Source: Octopus bimaculoides (lineage: Eukaryota). Taken from it: DNA of 60,700 nt. Positions 9,757 to 60,002 of this stretch are shown here, one piece after another. The DNA is taken from the NCBI RefSeq assembly GCF_001194135.2, contig NC_068983.1, positions 33,405,938 through 33,466,637 on the forward strand, given 5' to 3'. The translations under genes and the position numbers were made by a program. The notes beneath the pieces were generated by a model, which worked only from the letters and a program-made list of their open reading frames with translations, had not been told where the DNA came from and made no database searches. Every line of letters starts with the position of its first letter. The first letter of the stretch is position 1.

Positions 9757-10678
9757 CTTAAAATCTTGGTTAGCTCCAAAGTAGATAGGTATGAATGCCA
9801 ACCACACTATACATGTGCTGTACATGGTAAAAGCTATGTATTTAGCTTCGTTGAAGTTCTGTGGGATCTTTCGTGTTTTGAAAGCATATACCGTACATAA
9901 GATAATGAGGAACATATTGTAGAAAAGGGAGATAACTATTGCTATCTGACTTGTCTTGCACTTTAAAATTAAGGCGTCTTTTCCTTGGAGGACGTACATA
10001 ATATCTGGTCTTTCGAAGCCAATCCATGTAAAAGCTCCAACTACTTGAACAGAGACCAAGGAGAAACAAATAATTACTTGTGACCTTGGACTTGTATAGC
10101 TTGGCCTTTTCACAACTGCTCGAATACCACGATTGAAAATTCGGTAAATTCGGTTGGTTTTGGTTAACATTGAGGCATAAACGAGGCTTAGAGAGGATCC
10201 AAGACCTAAACGCATAATAGTGCAAATTGCTATCGATGGCCTGGCAAGCATCACGAATGATGTGCCGTATGAAAGGAAAATACCCAGAAAAAGTATATAA
10301 CACAGCTCTCGGCCTGATGCCATGATTACTGGCGTTTTGCTATATAATATGAATGTAACTAAAACGAAAATTGTTGAAACTATTCCTAAAGCAGAGAATG
10401 TAATGGGCAGAATTGCCCATAATGTTGTCCATTGAAGATGGAGGACTGGTAGACGTACGCATGAAGTTTTGTTCGCATCAGGGCGAAAGCCTAATGGACA
10501 GTCTTTGCAGGTGCTGACGTTCTCTAGAATTTGGTAGTCATTGCAGCGAACACACACCCAGCAGCAGGCATCACTGCCACTTTTAGCATAGCCAAGACCG
10601 CACGGCTCTGAACATATCGATGTCGGAGTAACATTTGATCCATTTCGCCATGAAATCTTGTCTTCAAATAAACGGAGA
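9757..10678 (-). CDS. GRM: mGluR-like gene, coding exon e: cysteine-rich domain (9 Cys) plus TM1-TM6
   Basis: Acceptor tttttctctag|T (phase 2, completing AG|T Ser from exon d) and donor AAG|gtaagt (phase 0); 922 nt. Contains SICSEPC...CCWVCVRC...C..C...C, TPVIMASGRELCY, LTKTNRIYRIF and KTRKIPQNFNEAKYIAFTMYSTCIVWLAFIPIYFG. Confidence 0.97.
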
Positions 10679-13619: not shown

Positions 13620-14690
13620 GACATAGCATTTATAGTGGGGAGAGGAGTGGTGAGGGCTGAGTGAAAGTTGGTGAGAGGTGGAGAGACGAATAATTTTAGA
13701 GTGCGCGAGTGGTGGAGGTACGAGACTTCAATGACTTACGTTTGTGAGTTAAAGGTAGGAGTTTATTAGTGATGGAATGCCATTCAGCCGAGTAGCTCTT
13801 CCCTGGATGCGGTCCTGCATATCAGGGTGCAGAGCAGTACCGCCCCAAATGTAGGTGAAGTATTCCATTGTGGGCCTCACATAAGCCTTGAAAAGTATCA
13901 GCAGCTGTTAGGGTTGGCATTTCTTTTGGTCCTAAAAGATATATGCAGTACTAGCTATGCTTGTAGGATGCGGTACTAGCTATGCTAAGGATGTTCTTTT
14001 GCCAGAAGTGATCCTCAGTTTATTGAGGTCCTGCATCTGGAGCAGCTGCGAAGGCTCTCGCTTAGCGTCAATCAAATTTAGAGATACAGAGTTGAGGGCA
14101 TTTTTTAAATATGATTGGGGGTTGATTTTTGTTTCTGATTTTAAAAGACATTAAGTTGGCACGGCTCTATTGAAGGAAGCTCTCAATGTCTCCGTTTACG
14201 GAATCAATGTGAGTTTAGAGCATTATACTTAAATTTGCGAGAGGATGATGTATGGTTAGGAAAGCTTATAGACGAATGAAGGGCCGTGTTTTCTAATAAG
14301 GGTGGGTATTCTTCGACATGACGGTAATTTGTTCATCGAGATATTGAGGAAAGAGATTGTCCTACAGAATCTATCCCTGAAGAACACAGGAGTTGATTGA
14401 GAGTAGAGCAGAAAGAACTCCGTCAACACATGTTGCAATAATGCGATTTGAGAGGAAGCTTCTGATCCAAAAGGTGACAAATGGATGGGACCCATAGACA
14501 GTTAGTTTGAAAGAAATTTGCATGTCAGGTACAGTTGCGATTCCCTTGAGGAGAAACATCGTTATTGCAGGACATCTTCAGAACAAGAACCCACCGGTGA
14601 GTGATATAAGAGAGGGTCCCAGTGGATCTGACTCTACGGAAGACAAACTGGTAGTTATTGAGGAGAGACAGGGATTCTAGACCTACAGTT
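13620..14690 (-). mobile_element. Decayed non-LTR retrotransposon (Jockey/CR1-like reverse transcriptase 3' part)
   Basis: Broken frames give LESLSLLNNYQFVFRRVRSTG.LSYITHRW (compare QYGFR..RSTG) and KLTVYGSHPFVTFWIRSFLSNRIIATCVDGVLS...INSCVLQG (compare RT domain 4 VPQG); many stops and frameshifts. Confidence 0.8.
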
Positions 14691-15473: not shown

Positions 15474-15597
15474 CTGCCCGTCCATTCTCCAATCCTAATA
15501 TATTTATATTCAATATCATCTTTTTGATACTGGTAAACATCATAGCGACCTGGTCCATCGCCTTTTTCATTAAACTCTACTGTTTCATCAGCGATAC
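15474..15597 (-). CDS. GRM: mGluR-like gene, coding exon d: (G)[40 protein letters not shown](S)
   Basis: Not in the ORF track. Acceptor cattgcag|GT and donor AG|gtaaga; 124 nt, phase 1-2. Matches the V.FN..GD.PGRYD..QYQ...IG.W motif at the end of the Venus-flytrap domain. Confidence 0.95.
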
Positions 15598-32639: not shown

Positions 32640-33134
32640 NNNNNNNNNNNNNNNNNNNNNNNNNNNNNNNNNNNNNNNNNNNNNNNNNNNNNNNNNNNNN
32701 NNNNNNNNNNNNNNNNNNNNNNNNNNNNNNNNNNNNNNNNNNNNNNNNNNNNNNNNNNNNNNNNNNNNNNNNNNNNNNNNNNNNNNNNNNNNNNNNNNNN
32801 NNNNNNNNNNNNNNNNNNNNNNNNNNNNNNNNNNNNNNNNNNNNNNNNNNNNNNNNNNNNNNNNNNNNNNNNNNNNNNNNNNNNNNNNNNNNNNNNNNNN
32901 NNNNNNNNNNNNNNNNNNNNNNNNNNNNNNNNNNNNNNNNNNNNNNNNNNNNNNNNNNNNNNNNNNNNNNNNNNNNNNNNNNNNNNNNNNNNNNNNNNNN
33001 NNNNNNNNNNNNNNNNNNNNNNNNNNNNNNNNNNNNNNNNNNNNNNNNNNNNNNNNNNNNNNNNNNNNNNNNNNNNNNNNNNNNNNNNNNNNNNNNNNNN
33101 NNNNNNNNNNNNNNNNNNNNNNNNNNNNNNNNNN
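32640..33134. other. Assembly gap that truncates mGluR exon c
   Basis: A run of 495 N starts directly after codon CAT (His) of exon c and is bordered on the other side by (TTC)n. Confidence 0.95.
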
Positions 33135-33310
33135 ATGACGTAACAGTTCTTCTCCGGGTAAATTGCGGCTGGCTCGGCACAATTTCACTTCGCTATTACA
33201 TTTTTCTTTGATCATATTTTCAACCGCATGTGCCAATGAATAGACGGAATCAATTACAAATTGCACCAATCCTTCCTGTTGGTAGCTGACCCTGTCAAGG
33301 CTTTCGTCGC
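33135..33310 (-). CDS. GRM: mGluR-like gene, coding exon c (3' end hidden by an N gap): (G)DESLDRVSYQQEGLVQFVIDSVYSLAHAVENMIKEKCNSEVKLCRASRNLPGEELLRH...
   Basis: Strong acceptor ctctttccttctctgttgcag|GC at 33311/33310, phase 1. Matches the mGluR motif YEQEGKVQFVIDAVY..A.AL..M. The reading frame runs into the gap 32640-33134. Confidence 0.93.
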
Positions 33311-40403: not shown

Positions 40404-41072
<669 letters not shown>

Positions 41073-48985: not shown

Positions 48986-50164
48986 TGCATTCTTTTTTTT
49001 ACCCACTTATTTTCAGTTTCATTCGTTTTCAATTGAGAACAGATAGAGAACGGTGAAGTGGAGGAGAATAATTAGAGAAAGGGTGGGAGAGAAAAAGAAT
49101 AAGAAAGAGGAGCAGAGAGAGGAATAGAGATAGTCATAGATTAGTGTCGCATCAGAATTATTAAGTTAAAACTTACTTGAAAATGGATGGGTGTCGTTCG
49201 ATCATATAATAATATAAANNNNNNNNNNNNNNNNNNNNNNNNNNNNNNNNNNNNNNNNNNNNNNNNNNNNNNNNNNNNNNNNNNNNNNNNNNNNNNNNNN
49301 NNNNNNNNNNNNNNNNNNNNNNNNNNNNNNNNNNNNNNNNNNNNNNNNNNNNNNNNNNNNNNNNNNNNNNNNNNNNNNNNNNNNNNNNNNNNNNNNNNNN
49401 NNNNNNNNNNNNNNNNNNNNNNNNNNNNNNNNNNNNNNNNNNNNNNNNNNNNNNNNNNNNNNNNNNNNNNNNNNNNNNNNNNNNNNNNNNNNNNNNNNNN
49501 NNNNNNNNNNNNNNNNNNNNNNNNNNNNNNNNNNNNNNNNNNNNNNNNNNNNNNNNNNNNNNNNNNNNNNNNNNNNNNNNNNNNNNNNNNNNNNNNNNNN
49601 NNNNNNNNNNNNNNNNNNNNNNNNNNNNNNNNNNNNNNNNNNNNNNNNNNNNNNNNNNNNNNNNNNNNNNNNNNNNNNNNNNNNNNNNNNNNNNNNNNNN
49701 NNNNNNNNNNNNNNNNNNNNNNNNNNNNNNNNNNNNNNNNNNNNNNNNNNNNNNNNNNNNNNNNNNNNNNNNNNNNNNNNNNNNNNNNNNNNNNNNNNNN
49801 NNNNNNNNNNNNNNNNNNNNNNNNNNNNNNNNNNNNNNNNNNNNNNNNNNNNNNNNNNNNNNNNNNNNNNNNNNNNNNNNNNNNNNNNNNNNNNNNNNNN
49901 NNNNNNNNNNNNNNNNNNNNNNNNNNNNNNNNNNNNNNNNTATATGATCGAACGACACCCATCCATTTTCAAGTAAGTTTTAACTTAATAATTCTGATGC
50001 GACACTAATCTATGACTATCTCTATTCCTCTCTCTGCTCCTCTTTCTTATTCTTTTTCTCTCCCACCCTTTCTCTAATTATTCTCCTCCACTTCACCGTT
50101 CTCTATCTGTTCTCAATTGAAAACGAATGAAACTGAAAATAAGTGGGTAAAAAAAAAGAATGCA
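48986..50164. repeat. Near-perfect 223/224-bp inverted duplication (48986-49208 and 49941-50164) flanking a 722-N gap
   Basis: The arms appear identical in reverse complement except for one base in a T/A homopolymer. Confidence 0.93.
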
Positions 50165-50975
50165 TGGACAATTTCATAGGGATGTTGAAGATAAGACAGT
50201 CAGGGAAAAAAGATGGCTGTGGATGACTAAAACTGATTTAAAACCGAAAACGGAGGCTGTAATCTGTGCTGCCCAAGGCCAAGCACTAAGAACAAACTAC
50301 ATAAAATACAGAATAGACAACATATCAGAAAGTGATAAGTGCAGAATCTGTGGACAAAATGGTGAAACCGTATGACATATTACCAGGCAGTATACGCCAC
50401 TAGCCCAGAAAGAATATAAGAGACGCCACGACAATATAGCAAGGCTTCTCCATTAGACTCTTTGCAACAAGTATGGAGTTGACAGAGCAAAAAAAATGGT
50501 ACGACAACAAACCCGAAGGCATCATCGAAAATGATAATGCAAAGATCCTATGGGATTTTATGATTCAGTGCGACCATGATATAGAGAATAGGAAGCCAGA
50601 TATAATCTTAATTGAGAAAGAAGGCAAACTATGCTGGATCAGAGATATAGCATGCTCAGTTGACAACGAGGTATGCGATAAGGGAGAATGAAAAGTCGAT
50701 AGATACGACAGGTTAGCTTGGGAAGTTAAGCAGTTGTGGTTGATGAAAAAGGTGGCAGTAGTACCAATAATTTTCGGATAAAATGTTGAGAAATCCTTTG
50801 AACAAATATGGGCTGCAATAAGGGTGGAGCACTTGCAGAAAACAGCACTGCTTGGAATCGCTCGAATACTCCTGATGGTGCTCGAAAAATAAGAGGTGTT
50901 ACTTTGGTTCACTGGTAGTGAATAGCTGACACCGTAGTACATCTCCAGCGTTAGAAGCTGTGCAAAGGCAATAGT
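50155..50975 (+). mobile_element. 5'-truncated R4/Dong-type non-LTR retrotransposon (CCHC knuckle plus restriction-like endonuclease), pseudogenised
   Basis: MHGQF...DLKPKTEAVICAAQGQALRTNY...DKCRICGQNGETV*HI...KRRHDNIAR, ENDNAKILWDFMIQCDHDIENRKPDIILI...DIACSVD (PD..D-type RLE); (TAA)n tail from about 50975. Confidence 0.9.
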
Positions 50976-52639: not shown

Positions 52640-54020
52640 ATTACCATTTTAATTGTGGTCTCTGTTGTGGCCCTAAGCCTTTATTCTGTTTATTGTTTTG
52701 TCCCTCGTCTGTTGACTAACGGTCTCGTCTCGAGCCTGTCTCACTTTGTTATGTTTTGGTCCCGTTACCAGCAAGTTTCTTACCAGTGCCTCCAAAGTGG
52801 AAGCAATATTATCGATAATGACCGAAATTGCGCTTGACACAGTCGCCGATAACTGAAGAGTTGGTGACCTTCTATGTTTTCTGCTTGTCTGTGCATTTAG
52901 TATATGTTCGTATGTTTATGTACTACACGTTCTTTTTAATATATGTATATATATATATATATANNNNNNNNNNNNNNNNNNNNNNNNNNNNNNNNNNNNN
53001 NNNNNNNNNNNNNNNNNNNNNNNNNNNNNNNNNNNNNNNNNNNNNNNNNNNNNNNNNNNNNNNNNNNNNNNNNNNNNNNNNNNNNNNNNNNNNNNNNNNN
53101 NNNNNNNNNNNATATATAGACACACAAGTATGTCATATTTTCCATTCGTTGTCTTATTATTTAATCCTGAATGTTTTATTTATGTAACGCACGCACTCAT
53201 TAATTTTTTTTTACCTATTCGTAGAAATATTCTTGGAATATTTTTTTGCCACTCTGTCTCTTTACTTTGCCTTTCTTAATTTCCTTTCTCTGTCTGTCTC
53301 TCGCTGTCTGTCTTTCTCTGTTACCATCCTCCCACTAAGACGTGATCCCTGACGGCCTAAGGCAGTGTCATTCTTTTAGCGTTGCCTTCGACCGGGCTGG
53401 TCACGATTTTTCTGAGGTCCTTGCTTCACTTTTTCATTTGTTTTTCTCTTTCTCTCTGTGTGTCTTTCTCAGATACCGTCATTCTCATTTGCCCCCTCCC
53501 TATCTCTCTCTCTGTTTGCCTTTCTCTGCCACCCTCTCCCCACTATCACGTAATCCGTGGCGGATTGGTCACGATTTTCTGAGCTCCTCGCTCTACTCCT
53601 TCCGTGTTTATGGTCCTTTAGGACAGATTTCATTTCTCCTTTGCGTTACCCATTTTTGTCTTGTCTTGCAGCCCTAAAGCTCTTTTTATTTACTGTATAT
53701 GTATTATTATCATTTTAATTGTTATCTCCGTGTGGCCCTAAGCCTTTACTGTGTCTGTTGTTTTATCCCTCATCCGTTCGCTAACGGTCTCGTTTCGAGT
53801 CCGTCTCGCTTTGTTATGTTTTGGTCCCGTACGCGGCAAGGTTTTTGCGAGTGCCTCCAAAGGGGACACAATGTTATCGATAATTACCGAAGCTGCGCTT
53901 GACCCTCTGGCCGATAACTGAAGAGGAGGTGGTAACCTGTGTTTTCTGTTCGTCTGTATATTTAGTATATGTTCGTATGTTTATGTAGTAGACGTTTTTT
54001 TCAGAATAAAGTTTAATGCT
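52640..54020 (+). repeat. Two diverged direct copies of a ~300-bp unclassified repeat (about 52640-52935 and 53705-54000); the second ends in AATAAA
   Basis: Shared ggccctaagccttta...ctaacggtctcgt...tttgttatgttttggtcccgt...gtgcctccaaag...ccgataactgaagag...tttagtatatgttcgtatgtttatgta. Confidence 0.8.
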
Positions 54021-59714: not shown

Positions 59715-60002
59715 CCACTATTTTCTGTCTTTTAGGAAGAATCGTCACGGCACTTTCTGCAACACTTTCTTGTTCCAATACTGGATGAATCTTGGCACCC
59801 CAACTATCACTGGCCAAGAAGGATAATTCCGATGTTCTGTTGCTTTTCTTCAAAGCTCGCAAAATACCACGACTGTTGTCTTCGTTTACAAACATCACAA
59901 CCACGCGGGAATTTGCAACACCAAGTAAATCTTTGACCAAATTATCAAACTTCTCTTCGTTCACACTGCGTGGAATCTTTAATGATCGAGCAATACAGAC
60001 AC
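59715..60002 (-). CDS. GRM: mGluR-like gene, coding exon a (Venus-flytrap lobe II): (G)VCIARSLKIPR...FLASDSWGAKIHPVLEQESVAESAVTILPKRQKIV
   Basis: Poly-T acceptor ...ttttgtag|GT at 60003/60002 and donor G|gtatgt at 59715/59714; 288 nt, phase 1-1. The peptide closely follows the group III mGluR pattern GVCIAQS.KIPR...SDSWGSKIAPV.QQE.IAEGAVTILPKR. The paralogue is unresolved. Confidence 0.95.

Follow-up and report, generated by a model that had tools for sequence, protein, structure and literature searches.

The window, a 60,700-nt stretch of Octopus bimaculoides DNA, contains five internal coding exons of a single gene on the minus strand, separated by introns of approximately 5 to 19 kb. Within their splice boundaries, exons A to E are 100% identical to the RefSeq protein XP_014781654.1 ("mGluR8-like", P0165), and the gene's exons have canonical AG/GT boundaries and open reading frames. 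Exon A (59715..60002, minus strand), supported by the RefSeq match and its splice sites, encodes lobe 2 of the Venus-flytrap (VFT) domain (GVCIARS...LASDSWGAK...ILPKRQKIV). Exon B (40430..40564, minus strand), also part of the VFT domain and bounded by AG/GT splice sites, matches residues 134-179 of XP_014781654.1 with 100% identity. Exon C (33135..33310, minus strand), which carries the leucine analysed below, matches residues 179-236 with 100% identity. Its product reads (G)DESLDRVSYQQEGLVQFVIDSVYSLAHAVENMIKEKCNSEVKLCRASRNLPGEELLRH; it starts at 33310 behind a ttgcag acceptor, and its 3' end is interrupted by, and lost in, an assembly gap of 495 N (32640..33134). Exon D (15474..15597, minus strand), written as (G)...(S), encodes the end of the VFT domain and is supported by the RefSeq match and its splice sites. 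Exon E (9757..10678, minus strand), for which Pfam adds to the same two lines of evidence, encodes the cysteine-rich domain (NCD3G) and nearly all of 7tm_3 (SLRLFEDKISW...FGANQDFK).

Pfam analysis of XP_014781654.1 identifies ANF_receptor (1.7e-36), NCD3G (5.3e-11) and 7tm_3 (2.8e-67), in that order, corresponding to the class C GPCR architecture of Venus-flytrap, cysteine-rich and 7TM domains. The same three families are found in the full-length octopod orthologue from Argonauta hians (GAB1600535.1, P0164; 948 aa), which belongs to the same 90% identity cluster as the RefSeq protein. A search of the window for the 5' exons (signal peptide through EGNYGERG) and for the C-terminal exon or exons found none. 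The RefSeq model passes from ...GEELLR straight to IADETVEF and omits the segment HIRNVTFQG, which is present in the O. vulgaris and Argonauta orthologues and missing from both the window and the model; this omission arises because the end of exon C falls in the assembly gap.

Several other features accompany the gene in the window, which has about 33% G+C and 21 N runs amounting to 5595 N in total. An inverted repeat of 216 nt with 100% complementarity (48993-49208 and 49941-50156) lies on both sides of the N gap at 49219-49940 and includes identical opposite-strand ORFs (49022-49165, minus; 49984-50127, plus); it looks like a scaffold-gap assembly artefact, not like a hairpin of biological origin. 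Between exons A and B, the intron contains a direct repeat of 278 nt (52666-52943 and 53731-54008; 82% identical, starts 1065 nt apart) with similar minus-strand ORFs, which is probably a dispersed repeat family. Two intronic ORFs, at 50151-50688 on the plus strand and 13752-14577 on the minus strand, presumably resemble the C-terminal part of LINE-type retroelement proteins, and neither has a Pfam match at E <= 0.01. Abundant microsatellites (CA/TG, GA/TC, ATT, poly-A/T) create long spurious low-complexity ORFs.

The residue of interest lies in exon C, where the minus strand reads tac caa cag gaa gga ttg gtg caa ttt gta att gat tcc gtc tat, translating to YQQEGLVQFVIDSVY. The initial annotation had read the TTG at 33269-33267 as a leucine within YQQEGLVQFVIDSVY, in the column occupied by a lysine in mGluR1 (K409) and mGluR4 (K405), and both parts of this reading are confirmed. 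The codon (33267..33269, minus strand) is flanked by GGA (33272-33270) and GTG (33266-33264). Searched against all PDB chains with phmmer, the 58-residue exon C peptide matches only metabotropic glutamate receptors; the top match is mGluR8 (E = 2.5e-10), aligned without gaps and placing the leucine opposite the lysine of SYEQEGKVQFVIDAVYSMAYAL. In a 43-sequence MAFFT alignment with human mGluR4, the octopus leucine occupies column 405. The human mGluR4 sequence was taken from the alignment of Ramos-Vicente et al. 2018, with numbering verified at K74, R78, S159, T182, Y230, E287, D312, K317 and K405, and it provides the residue numbers used throughout. By tblastn, exon C is single-copy in the window.

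The same leucine is present in O. vulgaris (P0044), in Argonauta hians (P0164), in P0030, a sequence probably from a cephalopod and 75% identical over exon C, and in RefSeq XP_014781654.1 (P0165); the first three all share QQEGLVQFVIDSV. TTG is two positions away from AAG, and the earlier judgement that a single base-call error is unlikely on this ground agrees with these cephalopod data. Because the leucine is independently present in other cephalopod sequences, a base-call or assembly error is excluded.

Bilaterian mGluRs are divided into classes I to IV, with Drosophila mangetout (DmXR) in class IV (Ramos-Vicente et al. 2018, PMC6307864). Protein searches used the concatenated exons, including the 7TM exon, as query, since a two-exon query gave mostly exon-sized fragments. 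The best full-length matches include Lottia LOTGIDRAFT_130755 (P0047) and Capitella CAPTEDRAFT_198326 (P0061), which share 55% and 45% identity with the octopus protein, respectively; LotgiG130755 and CapteG198326 are listed as Grm4-8, i.e. class III (PMC6307864). A search of representative proteins also returned several of 2200-3900 aa (P0167, P0170, P0171, P0182 and others) in which the mGluR query is matched in 4 to 14 separate stretches; these may be genuine multi-VFT proteins, or tandem arrays of class C receptor genes that gene prediction has merged.

A neighbour-joining tree (654 columns, 200 bootstraps) was built from anchor sequences and 25 sequences from our own searches. The anchors came from the supplementary alignment of PMC6307864 and included human mGluR3, mGluR4 and mGluR5; amphioxus class I-like (label inferred), 4-8 and class IV alpha; Saccoglossus class II-like (label inferred) and 4-8; sea urchin 2-3, 4-8 and class IV-like (label inferred); Lottia 1-5, 2-3 and class IV; DmXR; one further class IV-like sequence; and a Nematostella outgroup. 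Argonauta P0164 was used instead of O. vulgaris P0044 because the N-terminus of P0044 is spurious, which makes its residues at columns 74, 78 and 159 meaningless. The window protein falls inside class III in 200/200 bootstraps, within a mollusc class III clade (200/200) and a protostome class III clade (199/200). Class IV separates as a clade of its own (197/200) that includes DmXR and a Lottia gene; this class IV gene of Lottia is not the one orthologous to the octopus gene.

The pocket residues lead to the same assignment. Class III carries N/D-E at 286-287, S at 313, K at 317, R at 78 and K or L at 405. Class I carries E/Q-G, G, R, R and K at these positions, class II R-S/D/I, G/A, Q, R and K, and the named class IV anchors S-D or V-E, G, R, A/P and Q/L. 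In exon A of the window, the codons for N286 (59886-59884), E287 (59883-59881), S313 (59805-59803) and K317 (59793-59791), all on the minus strand, encode the group III-specific residues, and K74 is found in Argonauta and Mytilus; classes I, II and IV carry other residues at the group III-specific columns. The octopus N286-E287, S313 and K317 are thus unlike the class IV signature of S/T-D at 286-287 (V-E also occurring among the named anchors), G313 and R317. Both R78 and K409 are replaced in all class IV proteins (PMC6307864), whereas the octopus gene has a replacement in the K409 column and its octopod orthologue from Argonauta keeps R78. The initial annotation had suggested membership of a divergent invertebrate class in place of true group III orthology, which is not supported by the phylogeny, the pocket residues or the Grm4-8 orthologues of Lottia and Capitella. 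The gene is a true class III orthologue and not a member of the mXR class; it is the Octopus bimaculoides orthologue of the vertebrate group III receptors GRM4/6/7/8.

Comparison with the vertebrate receptors GRM4, GRM6, GRM7 and GRM8 (structures: mGluR8 6BSZ, mGluR4 7E9H) reveals a common domain architecture and approximately 42% identity over the concatenated exons, with vertebrate group III providing the best PDB matches for exon C and sharing the clade in 200/200 bootstraps. Residues K74, R78, S159, T182, D202, Y230, N286, E287, D312, S313 and K317 are shared between these receptors and the octopod receptor. The octopus sequence differs in having leucine for K405 and asparagine for D289 (NEDN versus NEDD). 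The alpha-amino-binding aspartate of SDSWG, D312, is encoded by the GAT codon at 59808-59806 (minus strand) in exon A, and its reported retention is upheld.

The N-terminal part of the pocket was read from the Argonauta orthologue, which has KKEKGIQRMEAM (K74, R78), GAASS (S159), YAST (T182), PPDSYQ (D202), EGNYGERG (Y230), FVNEDN, SDSWGAK and YQQEGLVQFV. The upstream pocket residues, which the initial annotation had singled out for inspection (R78, S165, T188, D208 and Y236 of mGluR1), are present in this orthologue as R78, S159, T182, D202 and Y230, and K74 is present as well. R78 and S159 of O. bimaculoides are taken from Argonauta because the 5' exons lie outside the window. The same pocket residues occur in Mytilus, Limulus, Capitella and beetles. 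In the octopod lineage K74, R78, S159, T182, D202, Y230, N286, E287, D312, S313 and K317 are all kept, and 405 alone differs among the glutamate contacts, so that the full set of contacts including K405 is broken by a leucine at this single position.

Position 405 was then scored in every retrieved protein that carries E287, D312 and K317, giving 152 class-III-type proteins. Residues were read by alignment to reference columns, as a motif regular expression had missed most representatives. The column holds L, V or I in 74 proteins, Y or F in 50 and K in 28. The L/V/I type comprises molluscs, annelids, arthropods, a flatworm and hemichordates, the Y/F type comprises nematode MGL-3 orthologues, and all Lys-type proteins with an assignable source come from vertebrates, amphioxus, a sea urchin and a crinoid. 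QEGLVQFVIDSV is found in Gigantopelta, Lottia, Patella, Dreissena, Mytilus, Batillaria, Physella, Aplysia, Mizuhopecten, Haliotis and Babylonia, which are all the other molluscs retrieved; scored across molluscs as the initial annotation had proposed, the column holds leucine in every one of them, making it the normal state. QEGLVPFVVDAV occurs in horseshoe crabs, a scorpion, a spider, a mite, myriapods, crustaceans and many insects. Among annelids, Capitella has L and Owenia V, and the flatworm Macrostomum has L. The hemichordates Saccoglossus, Glandiceps and Ptychodera (P0168, P0407, P0410) have L, L and V, respectively, while echinoderms and amphioxus keep K. Lysine at 405 was sought among the protostome sequences scored and none was found, and the distal lysine is missing from 124/124 of the protostome, hemichordate and nematode class-III-type sequences scored.

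Two groups within this set are close comparisons for the octopus gene. The protostome Grm4-8 proteins, including LotgiG130755, CapteG198326, Strigamia SMAR008465 and Apis GB44216, are direct orthologues with the leucine motif QEGLVQFV or QEGLVPFV and show no difference from the octopus gene that is relevant to the leucine. Nematode MGL-3 (C. elegans, C. briggsae CBR-MGL-3 and Pristionchus mgl-3) carries the class III signature of R78, D/E at 286-287, D312, S313 and K317 and likewise has no lysine at 405. Unlike the octopus receptor, the nematode orthologues (P0334, P0329, P0359) have tyrosine at 405 and glutamine at 74. Taken together, the sampled sequences indicate that the leucine is genuine, inherited from the protostome ancestor, and normal for this orthologue group outside chordates and echinoderms. 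The variant is a lineage-wide feature of the class III pocket and ordinary for an octopus. The codon neither singles out the octopus gene nor indicates a new receptor class. The gene itself is ordinary, being an annotated octopus GRM4/6/7/8 orthologue whose family and class are already published.

Conservation of the remaining pocket differs among columns. R78 is R in 23/23 Lys-type, 52/53 Leu-type and 42/42 Tyr-type sequences that cover the column. E287, D312 and K317 are invariant across the types, but these three residues also defined the set. At column 74, molluscs and arthropods carry K, hemichordates and nematodes Q. An 'A' at column 159 in Hymenoptera and Diptera, obtained with mafft --add --keeplength, is probably an N-terminal alignment artefact, because beetles aligned directly show S. 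Position 289 (NEDD motif) is D in 28/28 Lys-type proteins, N in 69/74 Leu-type proteins and N, H, Q or V in 50/50 Tyr-type proteins. The octopus FVNEDN has asparagine, encoded at 59877-59875 (minus strand) in exon A, in place of the acidic D289, and the one hemichordate checked, Saccoglossus, combines L405 with D289. The pair L405/N289 could be a charge-pair co-change of K405/D289; the change at 289 is only a lead, because it tracks phylogeny and so reflects very few independent events. A search of the Leu-type receptors for a new basic residue that might compensate showed K/R gains at several alignment columns, for instance 189, 233 and 275, any of which may or may not line the pocket.

Judged from these residues, the receptor rather likely still responds to glutamate, with agonist potency reduced or otherwise altered and the phosphonate agonists hit most. 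The flytrap would still close round an acidic L-alpha-amino acid, with L-glutamate the most probable ligand. S159, T182, D312 and Y230 would grip the alpha-amino-acid moiety, while R78, K74 and K317, with S313 and the N286/E287 region, would hold the distal anionic group. Position 405 would add nothing, leaving one distal contact fewer, and agonist potency may be lower or altered, above all for phosphonate or phosphate agonists such as L-AP4 and L-SOP, which depend on the complete basic cluster. The ligand class would not be expected to change. An altered affinity or pharmacology is plausible; a ligand switch is less likely, given that the other distal basic residues stayed invariant. The Leu-type receptors have kept the contacts to the alpha-amino-acid moiety, and three of four distal basic residues, fixed since the protostome ancestor, whereas the glutamate-unresponsive class IV replaced R78 too. 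This difference is the main argument that the Leu-type receptors would still bind an anionic side chain, most simply that of L-glutamate.

Two experimental results from related receptors fit a retained glutamate response. As summarised in PMC9750798, mutagenesis of mGluR1 (Hara 1993, Sato 2003) shows K409 to be the sole pocket residue whose mutation spares glutamate binding from severe loss. A schistosome mGluR in which six of seven pocket residues are changed is still activated selectively by L-glutamate (PMC9750798, 2022). Against the glutamate-receptor reading, K405 of mGluR7 is described as a glutamate contact (PMC13544217), and none of the eight mammalian mGluRs departs from the distal lysine. 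Selection for another distal chemistry could also explain why a hydrophobic residue has persisted over hundreds of millions of years. Rosemond et al. in 2002 are said to have found that K405A abolishes the binding of [3H]L-AP4 to mGluR4. The searchable literature yielded no mGluR data on K405A, K401A, K377A or K409A and nothing decisive on the pharmacology of any non-chordate class III receptor, whether molluscan, other protostome, hemichordate or C. elegans mgl-3.

The alternative with the strongest claim, although unlikely, is the main inference of the initial annotation: Leu-type class III receptors would have given up glutamate and sense another amino acid or metabolite, as the class IV receptor mXR does with L-canavanine. 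L-canavanine, but not glutamate, activates DmXR (PMC2695807), and the description of mXR/mangetout in the initial annotation, as lacking the distal contacts, unresponsive to glutamate and responsive to L-canavanine, agrees with the published accounts (PMC2695807, PMC6307864). Class IV shows that lost distal contacts can accompany a lost glutamate response. It is also without lysine at the K409 column, with Q in DmXR and Lottia LotgiG133010 and L in amphioxus class IV alpha, and it keeps the alpha-amino-acid contacts S, T, D and Y, as the octopod receptor does. A ligand-contacting lysine that is invariant in mammals has been exchanged for a hydrophobic residue (L, V or Y), which was then fixed across phyla, and the pocket surroundings are altered too, given the change from D289 to N in 69/74 Leu-type sequences. 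The analogy with mXR drawn in the initial annotation is nevertheless only partly valid, holding for the loss of the lysine in both but failing at R78, which class IV replaced (A in DmXR and Lottia, P in amphioxus), the pattern expected once an acidic group is no longer bound, whereas the octopod orthologue keeps R78 and K74. The conservation of R78, of K74 in molluscs and arthropods, and of K317 is difficult to account for unless the ligand carries an anionic distal group. K409 being reported as the least critical mGluR1 pocket residue, and the glutamate response of strongly divergent schistosome receptors (PMC9750798) also weigh against a changed ligand.

It is distinctly doubtful that the protostome and hemichordate class III receptors form a functionally distinct 'Leu-type' subclass, Tyr-type in nematodes, with an agonist profile unlike that of vertebrate group III. 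Such a subclass would, for example, be unresponsive to L-AP4 or L-SOP, or tuned to another amino acid, and 'group III' pharmacology would then not be transferable to invertebrate nervous systems, the octopus brain included.

The distribution of residue 405 also bears on the history of the group. Under a scheme of ancient paralogues, which we regard as improbable, Leu-type and Lys-type genes would both have been present in the bilaterian ancestor, with protostomes and hemichordates keeping one and chordates and echinoderms the other. Saccoglossus indeed joins the protostome Leu-type clade and not the other deuterostomes (125/200 bootstraps, neighbour-joining), and the lysine is missing from 3/3 sampled hemichordates (L, L and V), but this grouping is weakly supported (62%) in a tree built by a distance method. 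Both types are found together in none of the sampled species, and the scheme would need the sister phyla echinoderms and hemichordates to have retained different copies. The hemichordate D289, shared with the Lys-type and checked in Saccoglossus, is in keeping with a K-to-L change that arose independently. Finally, an origin of the leucine in sequencing, assembly or alignment error, or in a pseudogene, has practically no chance of being correct. In its favour stand the many gaps of the assembly (21 N runs, 5595 N in total), one of which cuts exon C itself. Against it, the residue is common to four independent cephalopod sequences and dozens of other species, the alignment has no gaps, and the exons show open reading frames, canonical splice sites and a 100% RefSeq match.

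The favoured reading is that of a class III receptor that probably responds to glutamate with reduced or altered agonist potency. The loss of R78 and K409 has been discussed for class IV only, and the leucine in class III is unmentioned there (PMC6307864); a search for a paper noting the class III leucine found none in the searchable literature, which is not proof of absence. The distal lysine is treated as invariant in mGluR pharmacology. Yet none of the class III orthologues sampled has it in molluscs, annelids, arthropods, flatworms, nematodes or hemichordates, with the other residues of the basic cluster kept. If the leucine alters agonist potency or selectivity, invertebrate experiments with vertebrate group III drugs such as L-AP4 would need to be re-read.
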